Below, one piece after another: positions 36,083-63,462 of a stretch of 64,000 bases of DNA (its first letter is position 1; each line of letters opens with the position of its first letter). The translations under genes and the position numbers were made by a program. The notes beneath the pieces are model-generated. The model was not told the DNA's origin. It saw nothing but the letters and a program-made list of their open reading frames with translations, and did no database searches. Location of the stretch: the sequence record NC_042100.1. One strand, given 5' to 3'.

Positions 36083-36106
36083 TATGGAGGTTCATGAGGA
36101 ACCTCT
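36083..36106 (+). promoter_or_regulatory. TATG late-promoter-like motif with flush 5' stem-loop
   Basis: TATG, then from its G: GGAGGTTC-atgag-GAACCTCT; 21 nt before a virion-type gene. Confidence 0.5.
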
Positions 36107-36127
36107 TTAGTTAATCAAGGAGATGCC

Positions 36128-37312
36128 ATGAAAGACGTAAGACAAATGCTCATTAATCGAATGAGTGAAGTCCATATCCGTAATGCGATGGAAACAGGAG
36201 ATCCAGCTAAAATAGAACAAGCTAACACGTTGTTTAAAGACCTGTTAGTGAGTGAAGTAACCATAAGTAACATCGAAGAAGTCGGTCGTGGTACTCAACG
36301 TTACCGTGCGGATATCGATCTTAGCCAACGTGGAGGTTCGGTGATCAAGCAGTACTGGTCGCCAGCTAATCCCACCGAGGCTTTAATCGAATTATACGAA
36401 ACGGGAGAATATTCTCAGAACGGGGATAACGTGACCAAAATACGTCTGAGTAGTAAAGCCGTGTTCCTACATTACTTTAATACTCATGATTTGATGACCC
36501 TGACCACGACTGGTTATTTGTCTCAAACTGAACTTGAGACCCTTTTCCCTTTTGATCCTCAAGACGTGCGTGTACAAAACTTCGGCGACTACATCAATTT
36601 TGACGGTCCTTTCATCAGTGGTCGCATGATAGTGCGTGATGGTAAAGAAGGGATATTGACCGGGACCCACGACCCGGTGGATGTTCGTATTTGGACAGAA
36701 GATGAGAACGGGGATAAGGAAGTGGTGTTGGATGACATGAACTACTTCCCGGTTGGTCATAACGTGGATACTAAGTTCCGCATTTATCTGGAGGACTCAC
36801 CGGATTATCAAAGCGGTGACACGTTTACGGTTTCTTATACTGGAGACTACCGACCTCTTGAAAAAGACACCCTAACCTATCAACAAGGTCAACCTTTAGA
36901 GATCCCTACCGATGAACGAATGGTGCCTGGACAAATTATCCAGTTCACTATCACTGGTAAGGGTGGTTTTAGTTGTATGGTGAGTGGTGTTGTGGTGATT
37001 GCGCACGCTTACACCTATACTCCAGATGGACGCATAGATATAGAAGTTACTTACCCTGAGGTTATCACTGGCAGTTTGGTGTTTAAGGGTAAACCCGAAC
37101 AAACGTGGCATGTTCCTGAGGACGACCAGCCACCTGGAATGTACCTCTACGATCGTGGGCGTTTCGTGCACTTCGTTCCTATGGACGACACCACACTAAA
37201 CGACTTTGAACTACCTTTACTTGAGCCTGGAAAATACGGAATGTACTTCCGTTCACCGGGCAGTTATAAGAATACCTTTGGAGGACTTTTGACGGTTAAC
37301 GCCCCAGAATAA
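36128..37312 (+). CDS. Putative virion protein, N-domain paralogous to the 1508-aa protein, beta-rich C-terminus
   Basis: RQMLI..GDPAKIEQA..F..L...EV...WSP aligns with the N-terminus of 37383. Confidence 0.6.
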   Translation: MKDVRQMLINRMSEVHIRNAMETGDPAKIEQANTLFKDLLVSEVTISNIEEVGRGTQRYRADIDLSQRGGSVIKQYWSPANPTEALIELYETGEYSQNGDNVTKIRLSSKAVFLHYFNTHDLMTLTTTGYLSQTELETLFPFDPQDVRVQNFGDYINFDGPFISGRMIVRDGKEGILTGTHDPVDVRIWTEDENGDKEVVLDDMNYFPVGHNVDTKFRIYLEDSPDYQSGDTFTVSYTGDYRPLEKDTLTYQQGQPLEIPTDERMVPGQIIQFTITGKGGFSCMVSGVVVIAHAYTYTPDGRIDIEVTYPEVITGSLVFKGKPEQTWHVPEDDQPPGMYLYDRGRFVHFVPMDDTTLNDFELPLLEPGKYGMYFRSPGSYKNTFGGLLTVNAPE

Positions 37313-37333
37313 CTCCTTAATTTTTTGTCATTT

Positions 37334-37360
37334 TATGAGCGGGGGCCCGTCCCCGCTCAT
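37334..37360 (+). promoter_or_regulatory. TATG late-promoter-like motif with flush 5' stem-loop (could also act as terminator)
   Basis: TATG, then from its G: GAGCGGGG-gcccgt-CCCCGCTC, followed by ATTTTT. Confidence 0.55.
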
Positions 37361-37382
37361 TTTTGACGCATGCTAAGGAAAC

Positions 37383-40300
37383 ATGATGAAACATATTCGA
37401 CAAATCCTGTTGGACAAAACCGCACTGATTCGAATCAGTTATGCTGAGTCCCAAGGTGACCCGGCGGAGATCGCTTTAGCTAAATCCCGCTTCGACGGTC
37501 TGATGGACGACGAGGTCCAGTTTCTAAGTATTAAAGAACGTTATGAAGGTGCCGGTACCTTCATCGGTGAAATCAAGTTAACTGGTCGTGATGGTTTTGA
37601 ATTCGTTCAAGAATGGTCTCCCGGTGACACCGTCCCGGTATTGAGTAAGAAAGAACGCATTAAGGTCCCTAACCTAGAAGTATTTCGTAATATCGTTATT
37701 CCTGGACTTTATTACGTGGAAGATATTGCCGAACTATGTTTGGTAGTAAAAGAGTCCATGTCAATTCTGGATATCCAGAAACTATTAGGTTTTGAATTTG
37801 ACCCAGGTGAACTAGAAGTTCGCTTGAGTCATTTAAAGGTACAGTCTCCTATCGTGGACGGCACGTTACCCCTTAAAACAGTGACACCTAATCCAGACGG
37901 TACTATGACTGACGGGACAGGTATTAATATTACGGACTCTTCCGTTGAAGGTAATATTTTGCCAGCCAACCCATACGCCCCTACTCAATACATTACTGTG
38001 GAACGAGTAGGTAGTGAACCGGTAATGTCGGCAGAAATTGATAAAGCTTTTAAAGCTGAATTCGTTGGCACGTACCGTCAAGGTGAGATCATCGAAGGGA
38101 CTCTAGGTGAAGATAACACTTTCAACTTAGACTTGGACCTTAAGAATCAACAAACCGACGATTTACAGATGATCGTTTCTGTAGGTCTAGACCGTGATAA
38201 ACTTACCGATGTTTACTCAGTCACTTATATTGACGAACATTGGACTATTGGTGAAGTTACCACACCAGTAGAGTTAACTCGTGTTGGACACCCTTTCCGT
38301 ATTGCAGGTCATGTGGTCGGGGACTTTGGACGCACACCTTGGGGTGACGAACTCCATGAACCTAAGATCATCATTGAAGAAGTTGATCAAGAACCGGTTG
38401 TGGTTCAATTCGACACAAACGGGATGTTTGATATTCAACACACCCCAGTAGTGGCGGGTGACATGACCATTAAATTTGTTTGTGGTCTTCCTCAAGATCT
38501 GAACGTATTCTCTGAAACACATCAGATCCTTACTGCATTGTCAGTCGACGATCTCGTCTTAGGTCCTTTGACTGCGGATAAAACCGAAGTAAGAGCTGAT
38601 GAGTTAGTCACACTGACCAGCACACTGCGTTCATCAGACGGACTAACCCTTACCGATACCCCAGTGGACTTTATCGTTGACGACCAAGTAACCAGTCAAC
38701 TATTCGCCTCTCCGGAAGGTGTATTAGAACACATTTACGATGTAGAGAACGATACTCTGGATCCCGTAACTTACGCTGTTAAATTACGACTTGGTGCCGA
38801 TGAGAGCAATGTGATTACGATTACGGTTCAACCATCTGATCAAGTCCCTGGTCGTTTTGAAATTATCAACGACCAAGGTGAGTTATTTAAAGAAGGTGAG
38901 TTGCGCTTCCGTATTTACGACACGGTAGATCGTCCTATGGTCGGTACTAGCGGTACTTGGTTCCGTGAAGGTGGTGCACCTAAAGCTTACGCTGTGGACG
39001 GTGAAGAATACGTAGCTACGCTAGATTCTCCGGTTGACGTTGAAAACACTGTGGTTGAATCAATCACATTAAAATGTCAATCACTAGAAACCCCAGTAGA
39101 CTTCACCTGGAATTTGGTTCGTCGTTTCGATGAAGTGTTCTTAGAACCTGATAACCCAACGACTGGTGTAACTGACGACACCATTACCTTAACAGGTAAA
39201 ACCTTGGACCAAATCGATGACCCAGTGGGCAATGTTCCATTAGTGTTTAAAACTGATGGTCTTAAGGTCTCTGACATCACATCCAACGAACTGGGTGTGT
39301 TCAGTGTGGAAGTAAGTGAGACTGATGAAGCGGAACATCTATATTCGTTTATTGGTGAGAACGATATCGGTGCTTCTTTAGCAGTAACCTGGGCAAAAGT
39401 TCACCAACTAACTTCTATTGACTTGACTAGCCCTACTACAGTAAGTCTCTTTACTGACGAAACCTTCCAGGTTACCGGTAGACTGTTGGATCAGTATTCA
39501 GAGAACCTAGTAGGTGAAACTGTGACGTTAGAGTTCCCTGACGGTTATACTGAACAACAAGTTACAACCGAGTCAGGCTTTAGCTTCACAGCGACTTACC
39601 GTGATAACGGTTCCCTATCACACACCATTAACGTTAAGGCTGGAGAGTTCACCACCCCAATTAATGTGAATTGGGAAGTTAAGAGCGAACCTATCATCGC
39701 TAACCTTACCGTAGTTCCTAATACGGTAGACATTGGTGAAGATTACACCGTGACTGGTGAAATCGAAGTCAACTACCCTCACGATTGGTCAAGCACTCGT
39801 GTTGCTATCACCAACGATGCAGGTGAGACAACTAACGTGACTTGTGCGACTGATGGCACGTTTACTTATACCGGTACTGCAAGTGCGCAAGGAACCCACC
39901 AGATCAGTGCTGATGCTGTGGACGTAGTAACACCTGAAGAAACCATCACGTTAACTGTTCGTGAACCTCGTGTCCCGACCGCTATTAACGTTCTTAACCT
40001 ACCTGAGAGTGCAAATACTTTTGAAGGTCAAACCGCTACTATTACAGGTAACGTACTAGATCAAGAAAGTGAAGTCATTGATACTGAAGTCACTGCAACC
40101 CTTGACGGGACACCATTGACCAACACCGCGGTAGAACCTGGAACGTTCAGCTTTGACGCTACTCACGACGGTGTGGGTACCGCAGTGATGACCATCAGTG
40201 CTGGTGATGTCACACGTGACGTAACAATCACATGGCGTGCAGTCACTTACGAATTCACTAACGTTAAGATGTTAGAAGAATCCGTACTTCAGGGAGAAGC

Positions 40301-41909
40301 GTTTGGTTTCCAAGGTACCTTGTTCAGTGAAGGCGGTGGTAACGTAGCCGGTAAGACTATCGAAGCATTAGATAGTTCTAACAACCCATTGACTACCGTG
40401 GTTACTGAACCTGATGGTTCTTACTCTGGTACTTACACGTCTAACACCCCTGGCGCGCTGGCGGTTAAATTCCGCTACGGCACAGTGGAGAGCGGGCAGT
40501 ACACAGTTATCATCCGCGAGATCATGGTTCCTACTACGGTTTCAATCAACACTGATCCTAAGACTTCGGATATCAACCAATCAGTCACTTTCGCCGGTCT
40601 AGTTAAAGACCAGAAAGGTAACATCATGGTTGGTGTGTTAGCTGAGCTTAAAGAGGGTGACACAGTACTGGCTTCTCAGGAAACGTTGTTCAATGGTCGC
40701 TTTAGTATCGATCACACTGAAACAGATGCGGGTGTTAAAACTTACACTGTTAAAGTTGGTGATGTTACTCACGACATCCAAGTCACTTGGGTTGACCCTA
40801 ACTTAGTTACGGCAATCAATCAAATCGCACCTATCGATAACGATGTGGTAGCAGGTGAAGAGCTTAGTGTGACAGTAGAAATGTTGAACTCTTCAGGTGG
40901 CGTGGTTTCAAGTAAAGAACCAACGTTTACTTACACCGGTGTAGCGACTCCGACTCAAACTGGTAATGTGTTCACCATCACTGAAACCGAAGCGGCAACC
41001 GCTACCTTGACGGTGAGTGCGGACGGTGTAGACCTTCCAATCGAACTAACGTGGGTAGCGCCTCCGGCAGTCTACAGTACTATTGAAGTAGTTTCAGGTG
41101 AGACAACCGGTACAACCGGTGAAACGGTTCCTGTTAAGATCGTAACTAAAGACCAGAACGGTGATCCGATGCCTAACCAAGCGGTTACTTGGAATACCGG
41201 TGGTGCACCATTCCCAGTTAGCTTTACTGACGGAAACGGTGAACTTACGTTCAGCTTCAGCTCTGAAGATGAAGGCGCAGTAACGTACAACTTCAGCGGT
41301 GGCGGTGGTGTGACAGGTACATCTCACACGATCACTTGGTCAGACCCGGCTCCAGTTTACAGTGCTATTGAGTTAGTGTCTGGTGGAACCTCTGGTGAGG
41401 TCGGCACGCCGGTAGAAGTTGTGATTCGTACCGTGGACCAAAACGGTGAGGTAATGGGTGGTCAAAACGTTGTTTGGAACACTGGCGGTATCCCGTTCCC
41501 ACAACAAACATCGGATGCCCAAGGTCTACTCACTTTCAACCTTAATGCGGACGAAGCTGGTGATGTCACCTACAACTTCCTGGGTGGTGGTAACGTGACT
41601 AAACTTAGCCACACTATCACGTGGTCTGAACCTACGCCGGTCTACACAGGCATCGACGTTCAACATGGTAATCTAGATGTCGCAGCAGGCGAAACAGTAA
41701 CCTTCACTATCACTACTCTTGACCAGAATGGACAACCAATGGATCAAGAACAAGTGGTGATGTACGACGGCAACATGACTTGGCCGGCTCGTACCTCTAA
41801 TCTAGAAGGTGTGGTCGTGTTTGAGTTTACGGAAGCCGAAGCTAAGAGTGTGACCTACGCCTTCCTAGGTGGAGACGATCGTAAAGAGTACACCGTAACT
41901 TGGAGTTAA
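37383..41909 (+). CDS. Large acidic virion protein with tandem Ig-like (Big_1/invasin-type) domains, 1508 aa
   Basis: About a dozen ~95-aa beta-sandwich units (G.T.T..G...DQ.G..V.N..V.......T...G.F.......G...Y...). Confidence 0.85.
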   Translation: MMKHIRQILLDKTALIRISYAESQGDPAEIALAKSRFDGLMDDEVQFLSIKERYEGAGTFIGEIKLTGRDGFEFVQEWSPGDTVPVLSKKERIKVPNLEVFRNIVIPGLYYVEDIAELCLVVKESMSILDIQKLLGFEFDPGELEVRLSHLKVQSPIVDGTLPLKTVTPNPDGTMTDGTGINITDSSVEGNILPANPYAPTQYITVERVGSEPVMSAEIDKAFKAEFVGTYRQGEIIEGTLGEDNTFNLDLDLKNQQTDDLQMIVSVGLDRDKLTDVYSVTYIDEHWTIGEVTTPVELTRVGHPFRIAGHVVGDFGRTPWGDELHEPKIIIEEVDQEPVVVQFDTNGMFDIQHTPVVAGDMTIKFVCGLPQDLNVFSETHQILTALSVDDLVLGPLTADKTEVRADELVTLTSTLRSSDGLTLTDTPVDFIVDDQVTSQLFASPEGVLEHIYDVENDTLDPVTYAVKLRLGADESNVITITVQPSDQVPGRFEIINDQGELFKEGELRFRIYDTVDRPMVGTSGTWFREGGAPKAYAVDGEEYVATLDSPVDVENTVVESITLKCQSLETPVDFTWNLVRRFDEVFLEPDNPTTGVTDDTITLTGKTLDQIDDPVGNVPLVFKTDGLKVSDITSNELGVFSVEVSETDEAEHLYSFIGENDIGASLAVTWAKVHQLTSIDLTSPTTVSLFTDETFQVTGRLLDQYSENLVGETVTLEFPDGYTEQQVTTESGFSFTATYRDNGSLSHTINVKAGEFTTPINVNWEVKSEPIIANLTVVPNTVDIGEDYTVTGEIEVNYPHDWSSTRVAITNDAGETTNVTCATDGTFTYTGTASAQGTHQISADAVDVVTPEETITLTVREPRVPTAINVLNLPESANTFEGQTATITGNVLDQESEVIDTEVTATLDGTPLTNTAVEPGTFSFDATHDGVGTAVMTISAGDVTRDVTITWRAVTYEFTNVKMLEESVLQGEAFGFQGTLFSEGGGNVAGKTIEALDSSNNPLTTVVTEPDGSYSGTYTSNTPGALAVKFRYGTVESGQYTVIIREIMVPTTVSINTDPKTSDINQSVTFAGLVKDQKGNIMVGVLAELKEGDTVLASQETLFNGRFSIDHTETDAGVKTYTVKVGDVTHDIQVTWVDPNLVTAINQIAPIDNDVVAGEELSVTVEMLNSSGGVVSSKEPTFTYTGVATPTQTGNVFTITETEAATATLTVSADGVDLPIELTWVAPPAVYSTIEVVSGETTGTTGETVPVKIVTKDQNGDPMPNQAVTWNTGGAPFPVSFTDGNGELTFSFSSEDEGAVTYNFSGGGGVTGTSHTITWSDPAPVYSAIELVSGGTSGEVGTPVEVVIRTVDQNGEVMGGQNVVWNTGGIPFPQQTSDAQGLLTFNLNADEAGDVTYNFLGGGNVTKLSHTITWSEPTPVYTGIDVQHGNLDVAAGETVTFTITTLDQNGQPMDQEQVVMYDGNMTWPARTSNLEGVVVFEFTEAEAKSVTYAFLGGDDRKEYTVTWS
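41061..41906 (+). repeat. Three tandem 285-nt (95-aa) Ig repeats
   Basis: P..VY..I....G....GETV...I.T.DQNG..M....V.WNTGG.PFP units start at 41061, 41346 and 41631. Confidence 0.9.
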
Positions 41910-41939
41910 CTCTAAACCAAAATAATTAAAATAAGAAAT

Positions 41940-41966
41940 ATAAAGCGGACTAAACATCCGCTTTAT
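41940..41966 (+). terminator. Intrinsic terminator
   Basis: ATAAAGCGGA-ctaaaca-TCCGCTTTAT followed by ATTATTT. Confidence 0.75.
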
Positions 41967-41977
41967 ATTATTTCGAG

Positions 41978-41995
41978 TCTATATCATAAGAGTGT
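41978..41995 (+). promoter_or_regulatory. Putative early promoter, copy 3
   Basis: TCTATATCATAAGAGTGT right after a terminator; heads the 42-46 kb block. Confidence 0.75.
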
Positions 41996-42018
41996 AAGGG
42001 AAACTTAATTAAGCTTTT

Positions 42019-42789
42019 ATGAGTAAGGAAATGTCTATGCAACATCAACGTTATTGTCATGACTTCCAGAAGTTAATGGTCTCTTTGTCATGGCTAGGGC
42101 AAATCATGGGTTACGTGGAAGTATTCGATGAATACCGAGACCGTAAACTCATTAGTACCGACCATGTGTCGTTTGGTATACATCATGAAAACCAATACGC
42201 CTCGTTCTTCTTTCTAGATGAAGATGGTAAATATCATGAAGTCACGCTGAATGATAAAGGTCGTGTCCCAGCTGTTAAAGTGGTTCAAGAACTCCGCACA
42301 CTTATTTTAAATCAACCGGAATTATTCCGATTGTTAGCAGAGAACGCAGGGTCACTTAATTCATTAGTCATCAAAGTGGTAGGGGAAACCATGAAACTTC
42401 ACAGCGATGACTTAGCCAGTAAGTTATTGCGTTACGGACTCAGTGATTATCAAAAGCTCCTAGATGAAGATCTCAAAGCTTTTAGTAGTAACTGGATGTC
42501 TTTATGGGTGTGGTTCTTCACACTCCCTCATATCGCCGCAGAGTTCGATTTAAAGCTAGATGAATCGATCACGTTAACTTATTGTATGATTCGTCCTCGT
42601 TCCAGAGAGTATTGTGAAACAAAAGTTCAAATGGTTCATACCGAGTTAGATAACTTTTACGTCACACTACACTTCGAAACGATCAACACCAACAACAGCG
42701 CTATTGTTTATAAGCACTTAGAACCAAACTTCTGGGACGACGAACGTTTGGATTCTTTTGAACTCATCCAACATTTATATCAAGGTTAA
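42019..42789 (+). CDS. Hypothetical early protein (module-B family), 256 aa
   Basis: FFFLDEDGKYHEVTL..LRTLILNQPELFRLLAE resembles segments of 50284 and 54054. Confidence 0.7.
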   Translation: MSKEMSMQHQRYCHDFQKLMVSLSWLGQIMGYVEVFDEYRDRKLISTDHVSFGIHHENQYASFFFLDEDGKYHEVTLNDKGRVPAVKVVQELRTLILNQPELFRLLAENAGSLNSLVIKVVGETMKLHSDDLASKLLRYGLSDYQKLLDEDLKAFSSNWMSLWVWFFTLPHIAAEFDLKLDESITLTYCMIRPRSREYCETKVQMVHTELDNFYVTLHFETINTNNSAIVYKHLEPNFWDDERLDSFELIQHLYQG

Positions 42790-42790
42790 C

Positions 42791-42820
42791 AACTAAAGGT
42801 GTCTTCGGACACCTTTAGTT
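42791..42820 (+). terminator. UUCG stem-loop
   Basis: AACTAAAGGTGTC-ttcg-GACACCTTTAGTT, 13-bp perfect stem. Confidence 0.8.
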
Positions 42821-42836
42821 ACTTACCGGAGTCAGT

Positions 42837-43856: not shown

Positions 43857-43859
43857 ACC

Positions 43860-44192: not shown

Positions 44193-44282
44193 TTAACTTT
44201 CGACTGTGCCTTAGAATTTTATTGATCAAAAAACTTCACTCTCTCAAAAAGTGAAATCAGTAAAAATAATAAGGTACAGTCT

Positions 44283-44735: not shown

Positions 44736-44755
44736 TACATTAAGGTTTTATAACC

Positions 44756-48454: not shown

Positions 48455-49810
48455 ATGTCTAAGTCTAAACCTAACCACGACCTTTGGAAGATGTTTGCGT
48501 ACATTGCTGAAGGACTAAACAACCTTACTTTCATCATGCCTGTTGAAACTAACGGAACACCTTCCCTGCTACACACAGGTCTTGCACCAGAAGACATGAA
48601 TGTGACAATCTCTAATCACGAATACCTACCAATGACCCGTATTCGTATTGATTTTAATCTTCCGGTTGAACTTACGGAATACCTAGAGTCTGATGACCCT
48701 GATATGCCGTACAGTGCTAAGCAACTGAAAGAATGGTTAGGTGATCGAGAACACCTTGAGTACTTGGTGTACAACGTCATGATCGAAAGCATTCTGGAAC
48801 AACTTCGTGAGCTTAATAAATTGAGCAAGGAAGTTGACAGTTTCTCCAACGATCGTAACGTGAAAGAACTGATTGGTTTCATCGCCACTTTGAGCATGGA
48901 ACAAGTTAATTCAGAAGAGCGTAAGCATCGTAACAAGTACTACCCAATGGTTATTAACCGCATCCCTAACATCACGGTTTACGAACCGTCAGATGAATGG
49001 ATCGACGAACACTTTGGTGATATGACCGCACACGATGTTCAGCACGTAGATACAGTTGTTAATCGTAATGCCAAACGCATTGCTACCCAACTTGGCAAAA
49101 TTGGTGAGCTTGTAAACCAGTGGGGAGAAAAGACCCCTACAGTCAAGACACACGATTTATGGTTCTCCCTTAACATCGAAGACCATAAAATTAAATTGGG
49201 TCTGGATTTACAACCAGTACGCAATGAAGAAAATTTTGTTATCAATCGTACTCCAGTTAATCTTGATCAGTGGGAACATGAACAAGATCGAGAAATGATT
49301 GCAGCGCTCGAGTCACACGTGGATGAAATGAATATCGTCATTGGTAACCTATTGAACTACAATACTGGTTACGAAGTGTTGAATAAAGAAATCCACCAAC
49401 TTTACATCGGTAAGATCCACCACCCAATTGCTAAGCACACAGTGCGTGTTTGGGGCTTTGATGATGTATGTGAAGAAGGTCGTAAATTGATCGACGAAGA
49501 GATCAGCTGGTTCCTACAAACTATTGAAGATGAGTGCGTGCGCACACAGCGTCCAGTTAAACTGGATATCTCCAATATGATGTTGCATACGGTGGAGCAA
49601 GGTGAATCGTTTATCTTACCGCACGATGAACAAGTAATCGCTGAACGTTGTCAGACTTTCTCTGGTACGTTCTTTGATGCATTCCAACAACACCTGTACG
49701 ATGTAGAAACAGAACACTTCGCACCATACACGAACGTGAAACCTGCGGACCTAGACAACCAAGCGGTGATCACTGAAGAAGATTTGTTGAACGCACCTAC
49801 GATCCACTAA
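48455..49810 (+). CDS. Hypothetical acidic protein, 451 aa
   Basis: SD AAGGA; weak similarity to 51049 (GLAPEDMNV vs ALLPEEYRV; GFDD). Confidence 0.75.
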   Translation: MSKSKPNHDLWKMFAYIAEGLNNLTFIMPVETNGTPSLLHTGLAPEDMNVTISNHEYLPMTRIRIDFNLPVELTEYLESDDPDMPYSAKQLKEWLGDREHLEYLVYNVMIESILEQLRELNKLSKEVDSFSNDRNVKELIGFIATLSMEQVNSEERKHRNKYYPMVINRIPNITVYEPSDEWIDEHFGDMTAHDVQHVDTVVNRNAKRIATQLGKIGELVNQWGEKTPTVKTHDLWFSLNIEDHKIKLGLDLQPVRNEENFVINRTPVNLDQWEHEQDREMIAALESHVDEMNIVIGNLLNYNTGYEVLNKEIHQLYIGKIHHPIAKHTVRVWGFDDVCEEGRKLIDEEISWFLQTIEDECVRTQRPVKLDISNMMLHTVEQGESFILPHDEQVIAERCQTFSGTFFDAFQQHLYDVETEHFAPYTNVKPADLDNQAVITEEDLLNAPTIH

Positions 49811-49815: not shown

Positions 49816-49834
49816 TATGGGGACCCGTCCCCAT
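49816..49834 (+). promoter_or_regulatory. TATG late-promoter-like motif with flush 5' stem-loop
   Basis: TATG, then from its G: GGGGA-cccg-TCCCC; upstream of the single-Ig gene. Confidence 0.5.
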
Positions 49835-50218: not shown

Positions 50219-50236
50219 TCTATATTACTATGGTGT
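50219..50236 (+). promoter_or_regulatory. Putative early promoter, copy 4
   Basis: TCTATATTACTATGGTGT after a terminator; heads the 50-57 kb block. Confidence 0.8.
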
Positions 50237-50283
50237 ATGAATCCATACGCTATTTATTTCATTAACTTAAAAGGATAAACATC

Positions 50284-56026: not shown

Positions 56027-56037
56027 AGGAGATTGAC

Positions 56038-56655: not shown

Positions 56656-56974
56656 CCTGAACATTTGGATTTACGATAACTTAAATCCTGACGATTATAA
56701 AGACGTACGGGCGTTTAACCGACAAGACTATGTTTATTGTCAAATGGAGTACGACACTCATTCTGAGGTTAGCCTTTACATGGGAGACACTCGAGATCAT
56801 CGAGTCCCAGTCGTAATAATGGAACAACTTAGACCTGAGGTGTTTCTTTCTCATCTAAATAAGTTGGCTGAACAAGAACGTGAACGCATTATTGTTTTTG
56901 TTCCGGACTATCCCGAATTACTGGAAGTCTTAGATAAAAACAATTATAACTACCACCCAGCAAGTGGGGATTAA
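56645..56974 (+). CDS. Single-domain paralogue of 56038, 109 aa
   Basis: NLNIWIYDNL vs NLNIYRVDDI; ends VLDKNNYNY. Confidence 0.7.
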   Translation: MSTNLNIWIYDNLNPDDYKDVRAFNRQDYVYCQMEYDTHSEVSLYMGDTRDHRVPVVIMEQLRPEVFLSHLNKLAEQERERIIVFVPDYPELLEVLDKNNYNYHPASGD

Positions 56975-56980
56975 TAGGTA

Positions 56981-57013
56981 AGTACTCTCCTCCCGTTAAG
57001 GGAGGAGAGTACT
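56981..57013. terminator. Bidirectional intrinsic terminator
   Basis: AGTACTCTCCTCCC-gttaa-GGGAGGAGAGTACT between convergent genes. Confidence 0.85.
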
Positions 57014-57035
57014 ATTATACCTGTTTTTTTTTTCT

Positions 57036-57671
57036 TCAGCTCTGAAGATTTCGAAGCTGTTCTTCTAACACAGCAATGTAAGCACGATCCAAGACTTGTT
57101 CTTCTTCTAACTGCTTAACACGAACCGCGTCAGAAGGGTCTTTGGTAATCGCTGCACGTCGTGTATTTTCAAACACTTCGTTTTGTTCTCTAGAAACATA
57201 AGACTTAGTCGGAACCGTTCCTAGATGAACTTCAGGTTCACTTATACCAGTGATAGCTGAAGTTTGATCTTTAAGGTAAGTTTGGAATGTTTTCAGTTCG
57301 TCTTTTAAAGATGGTGGAACCGCACCCAAATCGACGATGTAACATAAACGTTCGTACAATACTCCATCTAACAACGGGAAAGATTTAAAGTATGTAGAAG
57401 GGACATGGATAGTAGGAGCGCCGGCAGCAACCAAGGTGATTACTGCGCCGTCTTCATTATCCAGTTGTTCCATCAAAGACTTGGTGTCGCTGGAAGACAT
57501 CCCGACCGGCTCACCCACTAATAAGTAAGTGTTAACCTTAGCGATGTTAAGTTCGTCAACCGTTCGTATTGCTTCGACCGTATACATGTATTTAGGATCA
57601 CATATTTGGTCAAACGGAGATAACGCCACAAAAGAACCACTGACTCCAATTTGAGGAATCACATTACTCAT
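57036..57671 (-). CDS. Conserved phiKZ-like protein, probably virion-associated, 211 aa
   Basis: Overlaps the stop of the 442-aa gene; core-genome synteny. Confidence 0.55.
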   Translation of the reverse strand: MSNVIPQIGVSGSFVALSPFDQICDPKYMYTVEAIRTVDELNIAKVNTYLLVGEPVGMSSSDTKSLMEQLDNEDGAVITLVAAGAPTIHVPSTYFKSFPLLDGVLYERLCYIVDLGAVPPSLKDELKTFQTYLKDQTSAITGISEPEVHLGTVPTKSYVSREQNEVFENTRRAAITKDPSDAVRVKQLEEEQVLDRAYIAVLEEQLRNLQS

Positions 57672-58992
57672 CGATCACCCCGTCTTTTACCATCTGCCAC
57701 ATGGTTGGACATAAGTAGTTAACCTTACCAATACGTTTGGTCACGTACAAGAAACCATGACGTTCTAAACGCTTGATGCCCGCAGGCGGAATACCATCCG
57801 GGCGTACCTGTTCGGCTGCCGATAATAACGTTTCCATTTGCTTAATGAAGTCAAACGTTGTAGGTTCAACCCGACCGTTATCCACGTCAATAGTACTTAG
57901 GATCTGGTAATCTGGGACCACTTGTTTGATTTTCACTTTACCGCCGTAGTTATTTGGTTTAGCAACAAAAGAAACCAAAGTGTTATTATACATGAACGGT
58001 ACAGTTTGTAAGGATTTTATGAGGTCCTCGTTATTAACAGAAGGACAATACTTGGTGGGTAAGGCGAGTAAGGTTTCGTAATCACCGATAGGGGAGTACG
58101 TCGACGCTCTCTTAGTCTCGTTCGTGACACCGACCGTGTTCCAATATGGAATACAAGTAAACTCTAGTGGATTGAACAAATCAGGTAGGTGAGGTTCCCA
58201 AGTTGTTTCGTTGCTATCCGAGCTTGCTAGGATGGCTTCTTTAATAGCTTCGTAAATCTGCTCATCAGCGTCAGTGGCATTGCCATAAATGATGACGGTA
58301 AAGTAAATGGGTACGGATACACCATTCGTGGTGTCGATGAATTCAAACTTTATTGGTCTACGCGCAGTATACGGGTATTTCTGACCAACTGTCAATTCGT
58401 TAACACGTTCCTGAACTTTTTCAGCGGTTTCTTGACGTAGACGTTCTTCTATATCTAGATGACTGTGTACGAGCAAGTAATCCATTTGTTCAGGTGGTAG
58501 GGGTAGCGCTACTAGGACCTCGCGGTAAGGGTAGCCGGATTCGAAGTGTCCCGTTGCATACCAAATGCGTGCGGTTACCGGATCCGTAGTTGGGAATGTC
58601 ATTTCCACATAAGACGGTAGGTAAATCGCGCTGTTCGTTACCATTTCACCGACGCTAACAATTTCAATATCTTTTGTGAAAGTGGCTCGGAGCTGTTGCA
58701 GGCATTCTTGAGCGTTTTGGTTCAAGTTACCTTTCTTACCTTGGTCTAATAACCATACGGTGATTTCATTCTGACGATCGATCAGCGCTTGGTCTAAATA
58801 GACCTCTTCGCCTTCAAGATTTTTAGAATAGAAGTTGATTAAAGTACAGACACCATTCGACTCCACGTAGGAGTTAGGGTCTTTGCTAAACGTCATCTCT
58901 TGTCCGGTAAGTTCACCGATAGGAGACGTCATCAAAGGGTGTCGATCATGGAGTTCCGGAATACTTCCGAACGATAAGAAATTAACAGGCAT
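57664..58992 (-). CDS. Virion structural protein (phiKZ gp157-like), 442 aa
   Basis: SPIGELT...TFSKD and LPDLFNPLEFTCIPYW segments; position two genes from the RNase H-fold gene as recalled for phiKZ. Confidence 0.55.
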   Translation of the reverse strand: MPVNFLSFGSIPELHDRHPLMTSPIGELTGQEMTFSKDPNSYVESNGVCTLINFYSKNLEGEEVYLDQALIDRQNEITVWLLDQGKKGNLNQNAQECLQQLRATFTKDIEIVSVGEMVTNSAIYLPSYVEMTFPTTDPVTARIWYATGHFESGYPYREVLVALPLPPEQMDYLLVHSHLDIEERLRQETAEKVQERVNELTVGQKYPYTARRPIKFEFIDTTNGVSVPIYFTVIIYGNATDADEQIYEAIKEAILASSDSNETTWEPHLPDLFNPLEFTCIPYWNTVGVTNETKRASTYSPIGDYETLLALPTKYCPSVNNEDLIKSLQTVPFMYNNTLVSFVAKPNNYGGKVKIKQVVPDYQILSTIDVDNGRVEPTTFDFIKQMETLLSAAEQVRPDGIPPAGIKRLERHGFLYVTKRIGKVNYLCPTMWQMVKDGVIDE

Positions 58993-59023
58993 AATAGTTT
59001 CCCACTAATAAAAACAATAAGGT

Positions 59024-59464
59024 GTGTTAGCGATGTTTATAGTTCTACAAGAACTGGCGGACCGTTTCATAGAATCCGTGATCCCAAAGGTTCAAGGAGA
59101 GACATACGAAGAAAAGATAAGAGTGGTATTACGGTGGGCGATCTTCTACTCTACCATCGTGACGTGGTTGTTGTTTGGTCTAGGCATTCAATACACCCAC
59201 ACGTTGTTAAAGAAGCAAGAATGGAAGGAAACCAGTGCGGTTATCCAACAAATCTTTGCGGTGGAAGACAACCCGTTAAAGTCATTCGTGACCATTAACC
59301 GAGGTTTAACCGCCCGCCTCGAGACCATTCAGGACGAACACATCGCGATTTTAAAAGAACGTGCAGTATTGGCTAGAGATAATGAAAGGTTAACTCGAGA
59401 AAATATTCAGCTTAAACGTTTAATAGAGTCTAAACAGTGTTCTATTCAGAATGAGAAACCTTAA
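59024..59464 (+). CDS. Membrane-anchored coiled-coil protein, 146 aa
   Basis: GTG start; TM VVLRWAIFYSTIVTWLLFGLGI; C-terminal heptads. Confidence 0.65.
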   Translation: MLAMFIVLQELADRFIESVIPKVQGETYEEKIRVVLRWAIFYSTIVTWLLFGLGIQYTHTLLKKQEWKETSAVIQQIFAVEDNPLKSFVTINRGLTARLETIQDEHIAILKERAVLARDNERLTRENIQLKRLIESKQCSIQNEKP

Positions 59465-59468
59465 TAAC

Positions 59469-59502
59469 ATACCGGACTGTTCCTTCGGGGACGGTCCGGT
59501 AT
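59469..59502 (+). terminator. UUCG intrinsic terminator
   Basis: ATACCGGACTGTTCC-ttcg-GGGACGGTCCGGTAT followed by ATTT. Confidence 0.85.
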
Positions 59503-59521
59503 ATTTCCACCCGGGTGCAGA

Positions 59522-59532
59522 TATATAGGTTA
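59522..59532 (+). promoter_or_regulatory. Candidate middle-class promoter element, copy 1
   Basis: TATATAGGTTA, identical to 61952-61962. Confidence 0.4.
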
Positions 59533-59556
59533 TCAATATAAACTAGTGGTATCGAG

Positions 59557-61089
59557 ATGACAACATTGAAAAAGAACATGGTGGTTTACATTGGAGTTGG
59601 AACCACCACCTTCAAGAAAACACGTCGCAAGCCGGAAACGAAATTATTCCATGCGGCGTTACACGGGTACACTTACAACCCGGAAGTTGAAGGTAAGAAA
59701 CAATTAAAGAAAAACGTACCAGCTACGATGGGTTATTGGACGAGCTCTACCACTACCTCAGGCATTGTGGTAAATCAACAAGACATTATTTCTGGTTATT
59801 CTTCGAGTTGTTCAGAAGAAGCCGAAGCTTGGGTAACGTTATTAGAGCAACTTCAAAGTTACGTATCTTCTGTGACGAAAGAGATCGTAGTTGAGAAGAA
59901 AGAAGAAAAAGAATACGATGTGGAATGGACTCGTATTTTGTTTATTCCGGATTCTCCGTTCTTCTATCGCTTAATGGAAATGACCGAAAGTCGTAAAGGT
60001 CAGTTAAGTGACGAGCTATTTAAACGTGTTCGTTCTCTGCAAGATTTCTTTAACCCATACATGCCGACCAGTAAGTCAACGGATGTACGTGTGGCGTTTG
60101 TTAAAGGGGGACTGGGTGCTAAGCGTTTAGGTGAAGAACTCGGTTTGTCTGATGTGATGACTCTCTGGGGTGACAACCAAGAGTGTTACGTCGTCAGCAC
60201 ACCGGTAAAAGAGTACGAGAACCCAGAAACGGGATTACCGAAGATCATTAGCGGAAACCGTTGGTATTTCCGCACCGGTAAAGGTACCGATTACTGGGAT
60301 GAAATCGAAGGTCATCGTCGTTACCAATTCGGTAAGGTCGAGAAAGGTAAACATTACTACGGGAAATTAACGCCTGACGTGACCTACAGCGCGTTGTTTG
60401 TTAAAGAACCTATTCCTTACTTCGATAAACTTTACAACTTCACAGAGCAGCGCACAGAGAACCCTAGAGAGCTAATGTGTACCGGGAACATGCAGTATGT
60501 GACCAGTAAAGGGGTGGCGCGTTTGATCGACACTTATCCCGGGGTTCGTAAAGGTAAAGATTTAGTCGTGCCTTTTGTGGTAGGGACTAAAGAAGACCCT
60601 ACGTTAATCGAACTTATCGACCCACCGGGTTTGTCGTTCATGATCGTTGAGTCTATGGATCGCATTGATTTAACTTTCCGTTGTTGGCGTAATCGTGATG
60701 AAAATAACTGTTATGGTGAATACCAAGAGTATTTTGACATCACTGATCGTTTCTTCGTAAAAGAAGAAAACAAAAAGAAAGAGATCAAGGTTAAACTACA
60801 TCCCGATTTTAAATCTAACGAGGCAGTGATTCGTCATACGGCCAAGCACCCTAAAGCAGTGTGTCCGGTCCCGATCATGTTGAGTGTGGGTTACGATGTT
60901 CCTGAACGCAACTGCTTTAACTCGATTACGGACCCAGAAGTAAAGGTGTGGTTAAACTTAGACTACAGTAATGATCGTTGTTTGATCTACCGCACCATCA
61001 TTGAAACCTCCGATTGGGTGTATGTCTTCACGTCTGCTTCTGCAAATGTACGGGTGCTGAACAAAAAGGAATTGGGTGAAAATAAATAA
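59557..61089 (+). CDS. Jumbo-phage RNase H-fold protein (phiKZ gp155-like), active site degenerate, 510 aa
   Basis: Family features HGYTY, PATMGY, EAE and PDS are present, but the first catalytic YxDG reads YIGV and WVKGH..NE.AD reads FVKGGLGAKRL. Confidence 0.6.
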   Translation: MTTLKKNMVVYIGVGTTTFKKTRRKPETKLFHAALHGYTYNPEVEGKKQLKKNVPATMGYWTSSTTTSGIVVNQQDIISGYSSSCSEEAEAWVTLLEQLQSYVSSVTKEIVVEKKEEKEYDVEWTRILFIPDSPFFYRLMEMTESRKGQLSDELFKRVRSLQDFFNPYMPTSKSTDVRVAFVKGGLGAKRLGEELGLSDVMTLWGDNQECYVVSTPVKEYENPETGLPKIISGNRWYFRTGKGTDYWDEIEGHRRYQFGKVEKGKHYYGKLTPDVTYSALFVKEPIPYFDKLYNFTEQRTENPRELMCTGNMQYVTSKGVARLIDTYPGVRKGKDLVVPFVVGTKEDPTLIELIDPPGLSFMIVESMDRIDLTFRCWRNRDENNCYGEYQEYFDITDRFFVKEENKKKEIKVKLHPDFKSNEAVIRHTAKHPKAVCPVPIMLSVGYDVPERNCFNSITDPEVKVWLNLDYSNDRCLIYRTIIETSDWVYVFTSASANVRVLNKKELGENK

Positions 61090-61093
61090 AAGT

Positions 61094-61115
61094 GAGGTAG
61101 GGATTACCCTACCTC
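61094..61115. terminator. Bidirectional intrinsic terminator
   Basis: GAGGTAGGG-atta-CCCTACCTC with A-rich and T-rich flanks between convergent genes. Confidence 0.8.
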
Positions 61116-61127
61116 CTTATTTTTGAT

Positions 61128-61937
61128 TTACCAACTCTGAACGGCATCACAATGACCTTTAAAGACCGCCGATAGTTCGTTCAATAAACCGATGGTTGCG
61201 CCAGTAACGTTCATGTAACGTTCAAACTCATCAAAGGTTTCTTTGAATTGGTTGATTTCACGTTCGCTTAAAACAATGTCGCTGGACAAAATACGACTTA
61301 ATACGACTTCCGCAAGTTCAGCGTTCAGCTTCAACTGACGAGCGATGATCTCAGCATCGCGTGCTTTAATCATTTTCACACGAAGGTTGAAGTCATTAAT
61401 AAGTGCAAACATACTACCGAACGACGGGTACAAAGTTTCCAGTGACACCTGCTGAGTTCTCTTAGGGTCACCTAGAGATTTAATGAACTTATCGATTTCA
61501 TTAATGTGTTGTGAAGTCCCAGAGATCGTATGACGATAAGTTGTTCCCACCTTACCTTTGGCTGCGATTTCTTTTAACCAACCGTAGAACTTCACTGAAT
61601 CGGTTTTAAACCCGTCCATTAAGGAAACTCCAGCCATGCAGTTTTTAACGTACTGATCCCACGTCATTGTACGTTCATTAAAGTGAACCGGCACACCCAT
61701 TTGCTTATCCACTTTAGATAGGTAGCTCAATTTATTAGCTTTAGCTTGCGCGCGTTTATAATCTACGGTGTGGATAGACCCAGACATCCCTGAGATCTTT
61801 CGATCTAATTCCAAAGACAGGCTGCTAAGACGTAATCGGAATCCTTCAATAGGTGTTAAAAACTTAGGGATACCGAATGCTTCATTTCCGTCCACTGCAC
61901 CATTTGAGCGTAGACGTTCCAAGTAATAATTTTCCAT
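61128..61937 (-). CDS. Virion structural protein (phiKZ gp153-like), 269 aa
   Basis: Start moved to MENYY (SD AAAGG); GNEAF resembles an S/A/G-X-E head-protease site; divergent from UvsX. Confidence 0.55.
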   Translation of the reverse strand: MENYYLERLRSNGAVDGNEAFGIPKFLTPIEGFRLRLSSLSLELDRKISGMSGSIHTVDYKRAQAKANKLSYLSKVDKQMGVPVHFNERTMTWDQYVKNCMAGVSLMDGFKTDSVKFYGWLKEIAAKGKVGTTYRHTISGTSQHINEIDKFIKSLGDPKRTQQVSLETLYPSFGSMFALINDFNLRVKMIKARDAEIIARQLKLNAELAEVVLSRILSSDIVLSEREINQFKETFDEFERYMNVTGATIGLLNELSAVFKGHCDAVQSW

Positions 61938-61951
61938 GACTGTAATGCCTT

Positions 61952-61962
61952 TATATAGGTTA
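61952..61962 (+). promoter_or_regulatory. Candidate middle-class promoter element, copy 2
   Basis: TATATAGGTTA, 31 nt upstream of uvsX. Confidence 0.4.
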
Positions 61963-61993
61963 ACTAACATAAAATTCAAAAACAGAGGTACAT

Positions 61994-63430
61994 ATGTCCG
62001 CCGCTTTTAATTTCGTCAAAAAAATCGAATCTTCAGAATCGATTCAAATTGGCTTGAACTTTTCTCCTATCTACGACATTAACAATGGTCGTTTCTTTAT
62101 TGGTAAAGATGACCTTGCTTATTGTAATGGTGGTGTGACTCCCAACAACGCCATTGCGGGTGGTTCGAATACCCAGAAAACAGGTATGTTGATCTTAAGC
62201 TGTTTAAGCTTCCTAGAGCGCATCCCACAAGGCATTATCATTTACGGTGATACCGAAGCTACCCTAGACATCGGTCGTCTATCAGAAGCCGTAGACGCAC
62301 GTTTTGGTGAACCGGGTTACTTTAGCCGTGAAATCTTAAATAAACGATTCATTTACTTAAGTTCCAATGATGGATACGACGGCACTCAGTTACACAATCT
62401 TATCAAAGAAGCTTACAAAGAATTCCAAGAGTCTAAAGGTGATAAGTCTCGTTACATCGAAACTCCGTTCTACGATAAGTCAGGTAAGTTGATTTCTATC
62501 TACACTCCTATCATGGTGATCACTGACTCACTAGGTGAGCTTCGCTTTAATGAAGCATCGGTTAAGTTCCAAGAAGGTGATGTGGATGAGGGTGGTAAGA
62601 AACGTACTCGTGATATGGAATTCGGTAACTTAAAACGTATCGTATTCGAAGATGCTCACCACCTAGGTGGAGTCGCCGGTCTTAAACTTTGGTGGGTCGG
62701 ACAAACTACTGACGTCATCAACATGGATGGTAAACCCCAAGAAAAACAATCGACCTTTATCCGTCAAGGTAAAAAGATCGCTAAGTGTCCTAAAGCCATC
62801 TTACAGCTTCCTGCTCAAGGTTACGAAATCATTCGTGGTTCTGCTCTTAAATCCGACCAACAATGGATGTACCCTAACCCGTTAGGTCGTGATGTCATTA
62901 TCGACGCCGATGCTCGTGAAAACCCGGATTTATTATCCTACGCTTACACCATGTTCCGTAACAAAGGTGGGTCTTCTGGTATCAGTGGTACATTCATCGG
63001 TTCTCAGTCAGACGGCATTCAAGAAGGTCTATCGATGTACCATGCGTTAAAGACCAACGGTTACTTTGGTCTAGACGGTTCTAAGGTATCTCATGAGTGT
63101 ACATTCCTGCCGGGAGTTAAAGTGGGTCGTACGACGGTTCGCAGTGTTATCGCTAAGAACCATAAGTTCTACCGTGCCATCACACTGATGTATCACATCA
63201 TGGTCATGCAACGTCAGTGGTTACGCCTTCCAGATCAATACCGCATGACTCCGGAAGAAATTTACAAAGCCGTTAAAGAGAAAGGTTTCGATTGGGATGA
63301 GTTATTAGACTCCGTAGATTTCTGGCACACCAACCCAGACATCGACAAACCAACTATCACGGCGATGCAAATCTTCCGCCTAGCAACCGGCGAATCAACA
63401 GCGACTGGTCGCCCACCTAAGAAAAAGTAA
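61994..63430 (+). CDS. uvsX: UvsX/RecA-like recombinase (phiKZ gp152-like)
   Basis: Variant P-loop GGSNTQKT, YGDTEATL, Walker B-like MVITDSL; 478-aa size typical of the jumbo-phage family. Confidence 0.85.
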   Translation: MSAAFNFVKKIESSESIQIGLNFSPIYDINNGRFFIGKDDLAYCNGGVTPNNAIAGGSNTQKTGMLILSCLSFLERIPQGIIIYGDTEATLDIGRLSEAVDARFGEPGYFSREILNKRFIYLSSNDGYDGTQLHNLIKEAYKEFQESKGDKSRYIETPFYDKSGKLISIYTPIMVITDSLGELRFNEASVKFQEGDVDEGGKKRTRDMEFGNLKRIVFEDAHHLGGVAGLKLWWVGQTTDVINMDGKPQEKQSTFIRQGKKIAKCPKAILQLPAQGYEIIRGSALKSDQQWMYPNPLGRDVIIDADARENPDLLSYAYTMFRNKGGSSGISGTFIGSQSDGIQEGLSMYHALKTNGYFGLDGSKVSHECTFLPGVKVGRTTVRSVIAKNHKFYRAITLMYHIMVMQRQWLRLPDQYRMTPEEIYKAVKEKGFDWDELLDSVDFWHTNPDIDKPTITAMQIFRLATGESTATGRPPKKK

Positions 63431-63439
63431 TTTAAATAT

Positions 63440-63462
63440 TATGGGGGTGGTTCGCCACCCTC
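63440..63462 (+). promoter_or_regulatory. TATG motif with flush UUCG stem-loop (terminator of uvsX and/or late start)
   Basis: TATG, then from its G: GGGGGTGG-ttcg-CCACCCTC, followed by TTTTT. Confidence 0.55.

Follow-up and report, generated by a model that had tools for sequence, protein, structure and literature searches.

Intergenic TATG tetramers at the 5' foot of hairpins in Vibrio phage Aphrodite1: candidate late promoters placed over putative terminators

The late promoters of phage phiKZ are read by a non-virion RNA polymerase (nvRNAP) that, as an earlier note on the DNA studied here had correctly stated, initiates at the G of the tetramer TATG (PMC4666361), and its subunit GP123 reads this tetramer as single-stranded non-template DNA (PMC12809450). 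For late promoters of this kind, TATG is necessary but not sufficient, and downstream sequence alters the output of the phiKZ promoter P119L about 30-fold (PMC4666361). Infection by phiKZ withstands rifampicin, and its two RNA polymerases act without the host enzyme (PMC4666361); the phage studied here presumably behaves alike. For the other end of the transcript, a conserved terminator motif followed by TTAT(K) has been described in phiKZ, along with 42 phage termination sites that directly follow promoters within 5' UTRs, and 17 candidate small RNAs derived from 5' UTRs (Putzeys et al. 2024, PMC10914365).

In our own count for phiKZ, 27 of 104 hairpins had the G of a TATG no more than 12 nt 3' of the stem, the distances peaking at +4 to +6. 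Two further systems bear on hairpins at the start of a transcript. In gamma-proteobacteria, a 5'-terminal stem-loop of the ompA type acts as a stabiliser by hindering pyrophosphate removal and the 5'-end-dependent attack of RNase E. Additionally, the promoters of the N4 virion RNA polymerase carry a DNA inverted repeat at the start site of a phage polymerase; in those promoters the polymerase recognises the hairpin itself, which is formed on the template strand upstream of +1.

The window analyzed in this study is a 64-kb stretch at the end of the genome of Vibrio phage Aphrodite1 (NC_042100.1), a phiKZ-like, nucleus-forming jumbo phage of Vibrio alginolyticus. Four intergenic TATGs in this window had been proposed as late promoters whose G opens a GC-rich hairpin, and all four combinations of TATG and hairpin were found at the coordinates claimed (36083, 37334, 49816 and 63440), as follows.

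36083..36086, + strand: site 1 TATG, putative +1 G at 36086
36086..36106, + strand: site 1 hairpin, 36086-36093 paired with 36099-36106; 8 bp, 5-nt loop, -10.6 kcal/mol
37334..37337, + strand: site 2 TATG, not conserved, within the stem
37337-37344 with 37351-37358, + strand: site 2 stem counted from the G, part of a longer helix
37335..37364, + strand: site 2 hairpin, 37335-37344 paired with 37351-37360; 10 bp, 6-nt loop, -19 kcal/mol; T5 at 37360-37364
49816..49819, + strand: site 3 TATG, 5 nt past the gene 0018 stop and 44 nt upstream of the gene 0017 ATG
49817..49834, + strand: site 3 hairpin, 49819-49823 paired with 49828-49832; loop CCCG
63440..63443, + strand: site 4 TATG, 9 nt past the stop of the UvsX-like gene 0002 and 47 nt upstream of the gene 0001 ATG
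63443..63467, + strand: site 4 hairpin, 63443-63450 paired with 63455-63462; 8 bp, loop TTCG, -13.3 kcal/mol; T5 at 63463-63467

The TATG lies on the sense strand at all four sites, with its G 42-47 nt upstream of a start codon, and the hairpins (-7 to -19 kcal/mol) start 5-22 nt 3' of stop codons on the same strand as the gene. Judged from the sequence, these RNA hairpins lie between cistrons and are of the intrinsic-terminator type, located just 3' of the stops in co-directional genes. In folds of the RNAs that begin with the G and run up to the next start codon, the hairpin was the minimum-energy structure in four of four (-11 to -19 kcal/mol), in agreement with the proposed zero 5' overhang. 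The accompanying claim that the G is the first stem base held for sites 1 and 4, but the helices of sites 2 and 3 pair the AT of TATG as well, extending two further pairs (ATG...CAT), and therefore the G is not the first helix base in DNA or in read-through RNA. The block GGGRCCCGTCCCC, said to be common to two sites, has exactly two occurrences, at sites 2 and 3, against 0.05 expected. Of the hairpins suggested to end upstream transcripts, only those at sites 2 and 4 look like canonical terminators, with a T tract that is not canonical at sites 1 and 3. The latter have four T among the eight bases 3' of the stem and fall short of a standard T-tract criterion (the tail TTAGTTAA at site 1 is a weak T tract, and TTAATTCG at site 3 is likewise weak), and sites 1-3 are absent from the terminator-like elements listed in a scan of the sequence.

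The genes downstream offered less than had been claimed, in that only one of them, 0027, looks virion-like, where all four had been described as virion-type. PHROGs and Pfam searches returned no function for the downstream genes apart from Big_1 in the gene after site 2, which encodes 1508 aa with Ig-like Big_1 domains, and when phiKZ homologues were sought as a guide to temporal class, most of these genes had no detectable one. An Rfam search of window positions 30000-64000 gave no family match, sigma-70 promoters were not enriched (26 found against 34.6 expected), and matches in sequencing runs were to DNA or metagenome contigs of related strains that supplied strain variants only. Small ORFs beginning at the ATG of TATG were considered and rejected: they lack a ribosome-binding site and vary in length and frame among relatives, and at site 2 the ATG itself is not kept.

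Comparison with related phages set sites 1, 3 and 4 apart from site 2. At the former three, TATG is invariant down to approximately 40-70% protein identity, the stems covary, and the spacer is always zero, a spacing retained although loops and upstream sequence carry indels; in every relative folded, the minimum-energy structure had the G paired as its first base with zero overhang. At site 1, where G 36086 lies 13 nt past the thymidine kinase stop and 42 nt upstream of the gene 0028 ATG, the block GATGCTATGGAGG is unchanged in six phages, to 40% protein identity, TATG is kept in pTD1, and stem pairing is 100% across five distinct sequences with two compensatory pairs. At site 3, TTATG is unchanged in seven genomes; the Aphrodite1 stem is 5 bp counted from the G (7 bp with AT), and the stems of relatives differ while all beginning at the G. 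In VP4B and pTD1 the site 3 hairpin is kept as a 9-bp stem without any T tract, and therefore termination alone is insufficient as an explanation there. At site 4, whose hairpin has canonical terminator shape, TATG is unchanged in 9 of 11 relatives and reads ATAG in the two most distant, and at least six different stem versions occur, every one paired from the G. A hairpin is also present at this junction of UvsX-like and gp151-like genes in phiKZ, EL and KPN8, with TATG elsewhere or absent.

Site 2 behaved differently. Its hairpin, 3' of gene 0028, has the canonical shape of an intrinsic terminator, and its stem is 100% paired among relatives with two compensatory pairs. In USC-1, 5 TSL-2019, phiKT1019 and pTD1 the TATG has become TATA with a compensating change of CAT to TAT, so the TATG at this site amounts to stem pairs. 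Site 2 is most likely just a terminator, whose stem would spell TATG through chance.

The wider record of the tetramer suggests that TATG is probably a late initiator in the Aphrodite1 clade, since it is conserved like Shine-Dalgarno tetramers and stands upstream of capsid, tail and virion genes. Between Aphrodite1 and pTD1, TATG was kept at 15 of 22 orthologous upstream positions, compared with 36% for all tetramers (p 0.002), and it ranked third of 79 intergenic tetramers by conservation, after the Shine-Dalgarno tetramers AAGG and GGAG. Genes preceded by a conserved TATG comprise those for the major capsid protein, a probable tail sheath and a minor tail protein and four labelled 'virion structural'; the conserved TATGs before the capsid gene lie at record positions of about 162167 and 162200. 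The TATGs of sites 1, 3 and 4 are likewise conserved, that of site 2 is not. Aphrodite1 has homologues of four of the five genes for phiKZ nvRNAP subunits (gp55, gp71-73, gp74 and gp123; tblastn, E 1e-14 to 1e-40), and phiKZ gp68 gave no tblastn match in the Aphrodite1 genome. In an alignment at 20% identity, three of the seven TATG-contacting residues of GP123 are identical in Aphrodite1 (F151, K158 and H331), whereas H185, K190, Y399 and Y406 are replaced (N, P, V/I and H).

The frequency with which TATG adjoins a hairpin was counted in the sense intergenic DNA of the whole Aphrodite1 genome, taking hairpins of -6 kcal/mol or better that start at the G. Such a hairpin was found at 8 of 47 TATGs, compared with 12 of 508 other WWWG tetramers (Fisher, 8e-5) and 125 of 2584 other NNNG tetramers (p 0.002). 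These eight cases include the four discovery sites and one more within an early-promoter-like motif:

50219..50253, + strand: fifth TATG-hairpin case in the window, G at 50232, with the TATG inside the early-promoter-like TCTATATTAC-TATGGTG

This fifth case differs in kind from the four sites, and another TATG-hairpin case, at genome position 146460, is not conserved. A hairpin at the G was seen for 4 of 52 TATGs in pTD1 (p 0.24, not significant) and for 1 of 155 intergenic TATGs in phiKZ, which is a depletion. The adjacency, whose genome-wide enrichment the earlier note had named as a check, is thus non-random in Aphrodite1 with few cases, but not significant in pTD1 and reversed in phiKZ. 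Because enrichment was not significant in pTD1, the pattern rests on the three conserved junctions together with weaker hairpins; 6 of 15 conserved TATGs had a G-start hairpin of -2 kcal/mol or better, versus 7-11% of control G positions. Among capsid-centred 20-kb loci from 16 contigs, no TATG was found at the 5' foot of a hairpin, and in the phiKZ-like ones TATG came after hairpins.

Set against the described systems, the Aphrodite1 sites resemble the phiKZ nvRNAP late promoters in having the same tetramer before structural genes, a homologous polymerase encoded in the genome and strong intergenic conservation. They differ in that a +1 hairpin is lacking from phiKZ late promoters (the model promoter P119L starts with unstructured sequence), in that the phiKZ starts are mapped at the G while those of Aphrodite1 are putative, and in that the TATG-binding pocket is only partly conserved. 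TATG at the foot of a hairpin is therefore not general to nvRNAP late promoters, and the idea that a hairpin supplies the downstream determinant still missing for the late promoters of phiKZ is ruled out by P119L, which has none. The terminator-TTATG cassette of phiKZ shares with Aphrodite1 a GC-rich hairpin and a TATG in one short intergenic stretch between co-directional genes, and at the homologous UvsX-like/gp151 junction of phiKZ both elements are present. The order, however, is opposite: hairpin then TATG in phiKZ, TATG then hairpin at sites 1, 3 and 4 of Aphrodite1. With TATG 3' of the hairpin, the new phiKZ transcript is free of it, whereas the Aphrodite1 order would have the transcript begin with the hairpin. 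The phiKZ order (G of TATG 0-12 nt after the stem) occurs at none of the four sites and at 7 of 65 hairpins elsewhere in Aphrodite1.

The 5'-UTR termination sites of phiKZ are similar in placing a termination signal directly 3' of a promoter, but their RNAs reach approximately 250 nt, whereas termination at an Aphrodite1 hairpin starting at +1 would give approximately 25-30 nt. The predicted Aphrodite1 messages are like those with ompA-type stem-loops in leaving no 5' nucleotide unpaired and the ribosome-binding site free; they differ in that the Aphrodite1 5' end is a predicted one and the hairpin also lies within the 3' untranslated region of the upstream gene. Unlike the N4 repeat, that of Aphrodite1 is downstream of +1, and the polymerase belongs to another family.

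Combined, these results suggest a promoter-over-terminator arrangement at sites 1, 3 and 4, in which one hairpin would end the upstream message and shield the start of the next, and we consider this reading about evenly balanced between being right and wrong. Transcripts of the upstream gene would terminate or pause at the hairpin, a step efficient only at sites with a T run 3' of the stem. Late transcripts of the downstream gene would begin at the G of TATG, read by a phiKZ-type nvRNAP; given such a start, the same hairpin would stand at the extreme 5' end with no unpaired nucleotide. It would then stabilise the late mRNA in the ompA manner, and the Shine-Dalgarno region is left unpaired in the predicted late mRNA. 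Of this scheme, the sequence, folds, covariation, TATG conservation and gene context are observed; that late transcripts start at the G, that upstream ones terminate at the hairpin and that the hairpin stabilises the late mRNA are three plausible steps that we infer. Counting against this arrangement, a transcript begun at the foot of a competent terminator, as at site 4, ought to undergo partial termination itself.

A simpler account, which we regard as rather unlikely yet a serious contender, is that the hairpins are only terminators or 3'-end protection of the upstream genes and that TATG has no initiating role at these sites, the adjacency having arisen from AT-rich flanks meeting G-rich stems, from ATG...CAT extensions and from slow-evolving intergenic DNA. 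The position of the hairpins just 3' of stops and the T runs at sites 2 and 4 would be expected on this account, as would the family-wide hairpin at the UvsX-like/gp151-like junction (phiKZ, EL, KPN8) irrespective of TATG, the lack of TATG conservation at site 2 and genome position 146460, the non-significant enrichment in pTD1 and the avoidance of the hairpin foot by phiKZ TATGs. It also agrees with the finding that, with all orientations counted, AAAG and ATAG equal TATG in frequency at stem starts. However, it leaves unexplained that TATG is invariant at sites 1, 3 and 4 while adjoining stem positions vary, that zero spacing survives the indels around it, that TATG conservation across the genome equals that of Shine-Dalgarno tetramers, and that a T tract is missing at site 3 in VP4B and pTD1 and falls below the criterion at sites 1 and 3 of Aphrodite1.

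The two other alternatives keep the hairpin close to a new 5' end. Improbably, in our view, TATG could initiate with the hairpin acting mainly as a promoter-proximal attenuator, so that most transcripts stop at about 25-30 nt and yield a tiny RNA or regulated read-through; the full terminator shape of site 4 directly after the putative +1 fits this, as do the phiKZ termination sites next to promoters (PMC10914365), but in phiKZ the 5' UTRs concerned can reach 250 nt and have no hairpin at +1, phiKZ TATGs themselves have no hairpin 3' of them, and T tracts are poor or absent at sites 1 and 3. More improbable still is RNA processing at the 5' foot of the hairpin, where a read-through polycistronic RNA would be cut just before the G to leave a downstream mRNA that opens with the hairpin, with no promoter there. 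The sequence preceding the stem is AU-rich, single-stranded and conserved, and read-through is to be expected at sites 1 and 3 from their weak T tracts. Phage intergenic hairpins do serve as processing sites, as with the RNase III sites of T7, but we know of no nuclease of such specificity here, and the conserved TATGs without a hairpin before capsid and tail genes fit an initiator better.

Extending the promoter-over-terminator reading, we tentatively propose, with more doubt than confidence, that across the Gorgonvirinae a subset of late units is built in this way, such that pairing in the hairpin closing the upstream unit begins with the +1 G. A single element would thereby insulate two temporal classes and provide a zero-overhang 5' stem-loop, in the inverse of the hairpin-then-TTATG order of phiKZ. 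A weaker form, with small G-start hairpins, would occur at approximately 40% of conserved late initiators, including those of capsid and tail-sheath genes.

Overall, the late promoter of the nvRNAP is a puzzle in which four bases are necessary and not sufficient, and the comparative evidence presented here suggests that the TATG rule reaches a distant, Vibrio-infecting clade. The geometry of TATG and hairpin is clade-specific: phiKZ has TATG 3' of its hairpins, and three conserved junctions of Aphrodite1 have it at the 5' foot. Should the starts not be confirmed, the sites would be ordinary terminators, and a list of candidate late initiators for this phage group would be what is left. If the starts are confirmed, these junctions would be natural and very compact modules combining insulator, promoter and 5' stabiliser, and a way into the question of how messages produced within the phage nucleus are protected.

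The window matches Vibrio phage Aphrodite1 (MG720308.1, positions 173723-237722, plus strand) without a difference. This 237.7-kb jumbo phage belongs to the Gorgonvirinae and carries PhuZ/TubZ and split RNA polymerase genes, with its genes mostly on the plus strand. The four TATG motifs with adjoining hairpins, together with the stems quoted for them in the earlier note, were all located in the window as follows:

Site 1: G at 36086, plus strand, hairpin after the thymidine kinase stop codon
Site 2: G at 37337, plus strand, hairpin after the gene 0028 stop codon
Site 3: G at 49819, plus strand, hairpin after the gene 0018 stop codon
Site 4: G at 63443, plus strand, hairpin after the stop codon of the UvsX-like gene 0002

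The hairpins begin 5-22 nt 3' of the upstream stop codons, and the G precedes the next start codon by 42-47 nt. In folds of the RNA between the G and the start codon, the proposed zero-overhang 5' stem-loop was the minimum-energy structure at all four sites, leaving the ribosome-binding site mostly unpaired. The sequence reported as common to two sites, GGGRCCCGTCCCC, occurs at sites 2 and 3 and nowhere else (expected 0.05). At these two sites the G does not open the stem as had been claimed: the helix runs to ATG...CAT, which puts two pairs ahead of the G and makes it third in the stem, whether in DNA or in read-through RNA.

The designation of the downstream genes as virion-type is not shown; PHROGs and Pfam assign no function except for Ig-like Big_1 repeats in gene 0027 (1508 aa). 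Genes 0028 (394 aa) and 0027 (window 36128-41909) share a homologous N-terminal region of ~85 residues, based on cross-hits between PHROG families. In relatives, 0027 is annotated as diguanylate cyclase or hemagglutinin-related, which looks like over-annotation of what is probably a virion surface protein. Proteins of the related phages USC-1 and 5 TSL-2019 are 98-99% identical to those of Aphrodite1 for 0018 (window 48455-49810) and 0001 (63490-63855) but only 38-44% for 0028 (36128-37312), whereas in PDCC-1 the relation is reversed (98% for 0028, 69-75% for 0018 and 0001). These mosaic identities point to recent recombination among these phages. Additionally, metagenome contigs of related strains have unrelated or diverged sequence in place of three stretches of ~260-330 nt that separate the GroEL-like gene from thymidine kinase (window 34364-35461), marking a variable region.

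The phiKZ non-virion RNA polymerase (nvRNAP) does initiate on the G of TATG, as the earlier note had stated; all four bases are required yet do not suffice, and output varies ~30-fold with the sequence downstream, which has no consensus (PMC4666361). The beta-like subunit GP123 grips the four non-template-strand bases (PMC12809450). Homologues of gp55, gp71-73, gp74 and gp123 are encoded by Aphrodite1, with 3/7 TATG-contacting residues of GP123 identical in an alignment of low identity. When 137 upstream regions of Aphrodite1 were compared with their pTD1 orthologues (77% identical overall), TATG was retained in 15 of 22 cases compared with 36% for all tetramers (p 0.002), ranking third of 79 behind the Shine-Dalgarno tetramers AAGG and GGAG. 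Besides sites 1, 3 and 4, the conserved TATGs comprise two copies ahead of the major capsid gene, which six genomes carry unchanged, and others ahead of a minor tail gene, several "virion structural" genes and the probable tail-sheath gene. A hairpin of -2 kcal/mol or better starts from the G in six of the 15, among them small hairpins ahead of the capsid, sheath and 0170 genes, compared with 7-11% of control positions. At MG720308.1 39437-39581, which is not part of the window, the probable tail-sheath gene and a virion structural gene diverge from an intergenic region whose two strands each carry a conserved TATG with a small hairpin at its G (GTAGAAA/TTTCTAC and GACAG/CTGTC); both hairpins also occur in pTD1.

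The individual sites differ in their conservation. At site 1, GATGCTATGGAGG is unchanged in six phages, even as the downstream protein is just ~40% identical, and the top of the stem carries compensated changes (pairing 100%, two pairs altered on both sides). TTATG at site 3 is unchanged in seven genomes over stems of GGGGA/TCCCC, GGGGAC/GTCCCC or, in VP4B and pTD1, a 9-bp GRGGTCGTR without a T tract. At site 4, TATG is unchanged in 9 of 11 relatives over at least six stem versions, the G being the first paired base in every fold; the two most distant relatives have ATAG at the stem foot. Site 2 reads TATA in four relatives with a compensating CAT to TAT change, so the G there is merely a stem pair and the site should be dropped from the set. 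At a further Aphrodite1 case (record position 146460) the TATG is not conserved; the invariant copy there is one that follows the hairpin and lies 24 nt ahead of a virion structural gene.

The genome-wide enrichment proposed as a check was observed over the complete Aphrodite1 genome, window included. Hairpins of -6 kcal/mol or better begin at the G of 8/47 sense intergenic TATGs, four of these eight being the discovery sites themselves and one (G at 50232) falling within another motif, compared with 12/508 other WWWG (Fisher 8e-5) and 125/2584 other NNNG (p 0.002). Hairpins at the TATG G were also lower in energy than those at control positions (Mann-Whitney 6e-4, 6e-3). On both strands, TATG is the tetramer whose last base most frequently begins a hairpin (25/1250 at -6 kcal/mol; 0.8% for all G-ending tetramers); with all orientations pooled, AAAG and ATAG match its frequency at stem starts. 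Among 65 co-directional intergenic hairpins, the TATG G lies at offset 0 (n=3) or 2 (n=3) from the first paired base, and only two TATGs were found within 30 nt upstream. The pTD1 whole genome gave 4/52, not significant, comprising the three conserved sites and one lineage-specific case, and capsid-centred loci in 16 contigs had no TATG at a hairpin 5' foot. Genes contain slightly fewer copies of TATG and its complement than expected. The lowest tetramer in coding regions of the entire genomes is GGCC (observed/expected 0.46 in Aphrodite1, 0.35 in pTD1), a strong depletion suggesting that a HaeIII-type restriction site is avoided.

Two other intergenic families were noted, as follows:

Motif ~ttcaaaTCTATATTAYCTWRGTG: window 22715, 32688, 41978 and 50219, plus strand; 16 more elsewhere in the genome
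Hairpins of 14-16 bp: window 6596, 19085/19118, 28348 (minus) and 50194 (minus); many sites elsewhere in the genome

The 20 copies of the motif in MG720308.1, all intergenic, plus-strand and strongly conserved, often lie 30-50 nt past a terminator, and in about half of them a hairpin begins near GTG, 11-15 nt from where the motif starts; by analogy with phiKZ-like phages, the motif looks like an AT-rich early (virion polymerase) promoter. The long hairpins have near-identical arms (ATAACTCCTACCTCC ... GGAGGTAGGAGTTAT), and several finish in ...GTTATG, placing TATG at the 3' edge. Many lie between convergent genes with the hairpin on either strand, and are therefore probably a conserved bidirectional terminator family.

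In contrast to Aphrodite1, TATGs across the whole phiKZ genome (NC_004629.1) avoid a hairpin at the G (1/155 sense intergenic TATGs vs 69/923 controls), and the model late promoter P119L, from published oligonucleotides and the genome, starts with unstructured sequence. Instead, a TATG follows 27/104 (26%) of phiKZ co-directional intergenic hairpins with its G no more than 12 nt past the stem, the distances being sharply concentrated at +4 to +6. This agrees with the published terminator motif, a stem-loop then TTAT (Putzeys et al., PMC10914365), whose tail therefore overlaps the late-promoter core. At the junction homologous to site 4 (gp152 UvsX-like to gp151), phiKZ has the hairpin first and TATG second, whereas EL and Klebsiella phage KPN8 have the hairpin and no TATG; the hairpin is thus old and family-wide, and the TATG placement lineage-specific.

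Combined, the sequence comparisons give roughly an even chance that these are inter-cistronic terminator-type hairpins with, at three of them, a conserved and probably functional TATG initiator fused to the 5' foot. The main rival, plain terminators without initiation at these sites, is possible but clearly less probable. The terminator role suggested earlier is partly matched in sequence, with a T5 run after sites 2 and 4 and only four T in eight at sites 1 and 3; none of sites 1-3 was called terminator-like by the built-in terminator scan. The strongest evidence for TATG as a putative initiator in this clade is the Aphrodite1/pTD1 upstream-region conservation. Promoter-proximal attenuation by the hairpins is improbable, and processing at the hairpin foot is more doubtful still. 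A search for transcriptomes from this clade found none.

If the foot TATG is an initiator, a late transcript beginning at its G would carry the hairpin at its very 5' end. A 5'-terminal stem-loop is an established stabiliser against E. coli-type RppH and RNase E, and a hairpin-first late transcript would fit the requirement for such a structure. The TATG initiator, intrinsic terminators, 5' stem-loops and promoter-proximal terminators are already known. Consistent with the earlier note, no description of a TATG at the 5' foot, with the terminator hairpin forming the next mRNA's 5' end, was found in the jumbo-phage transcription papers examined, nor an evident match among the titles and abstracts listed by a general literature search. 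The arrangement, seen to date at only a few conserved junctions of a single subfamily, can be tested directly.
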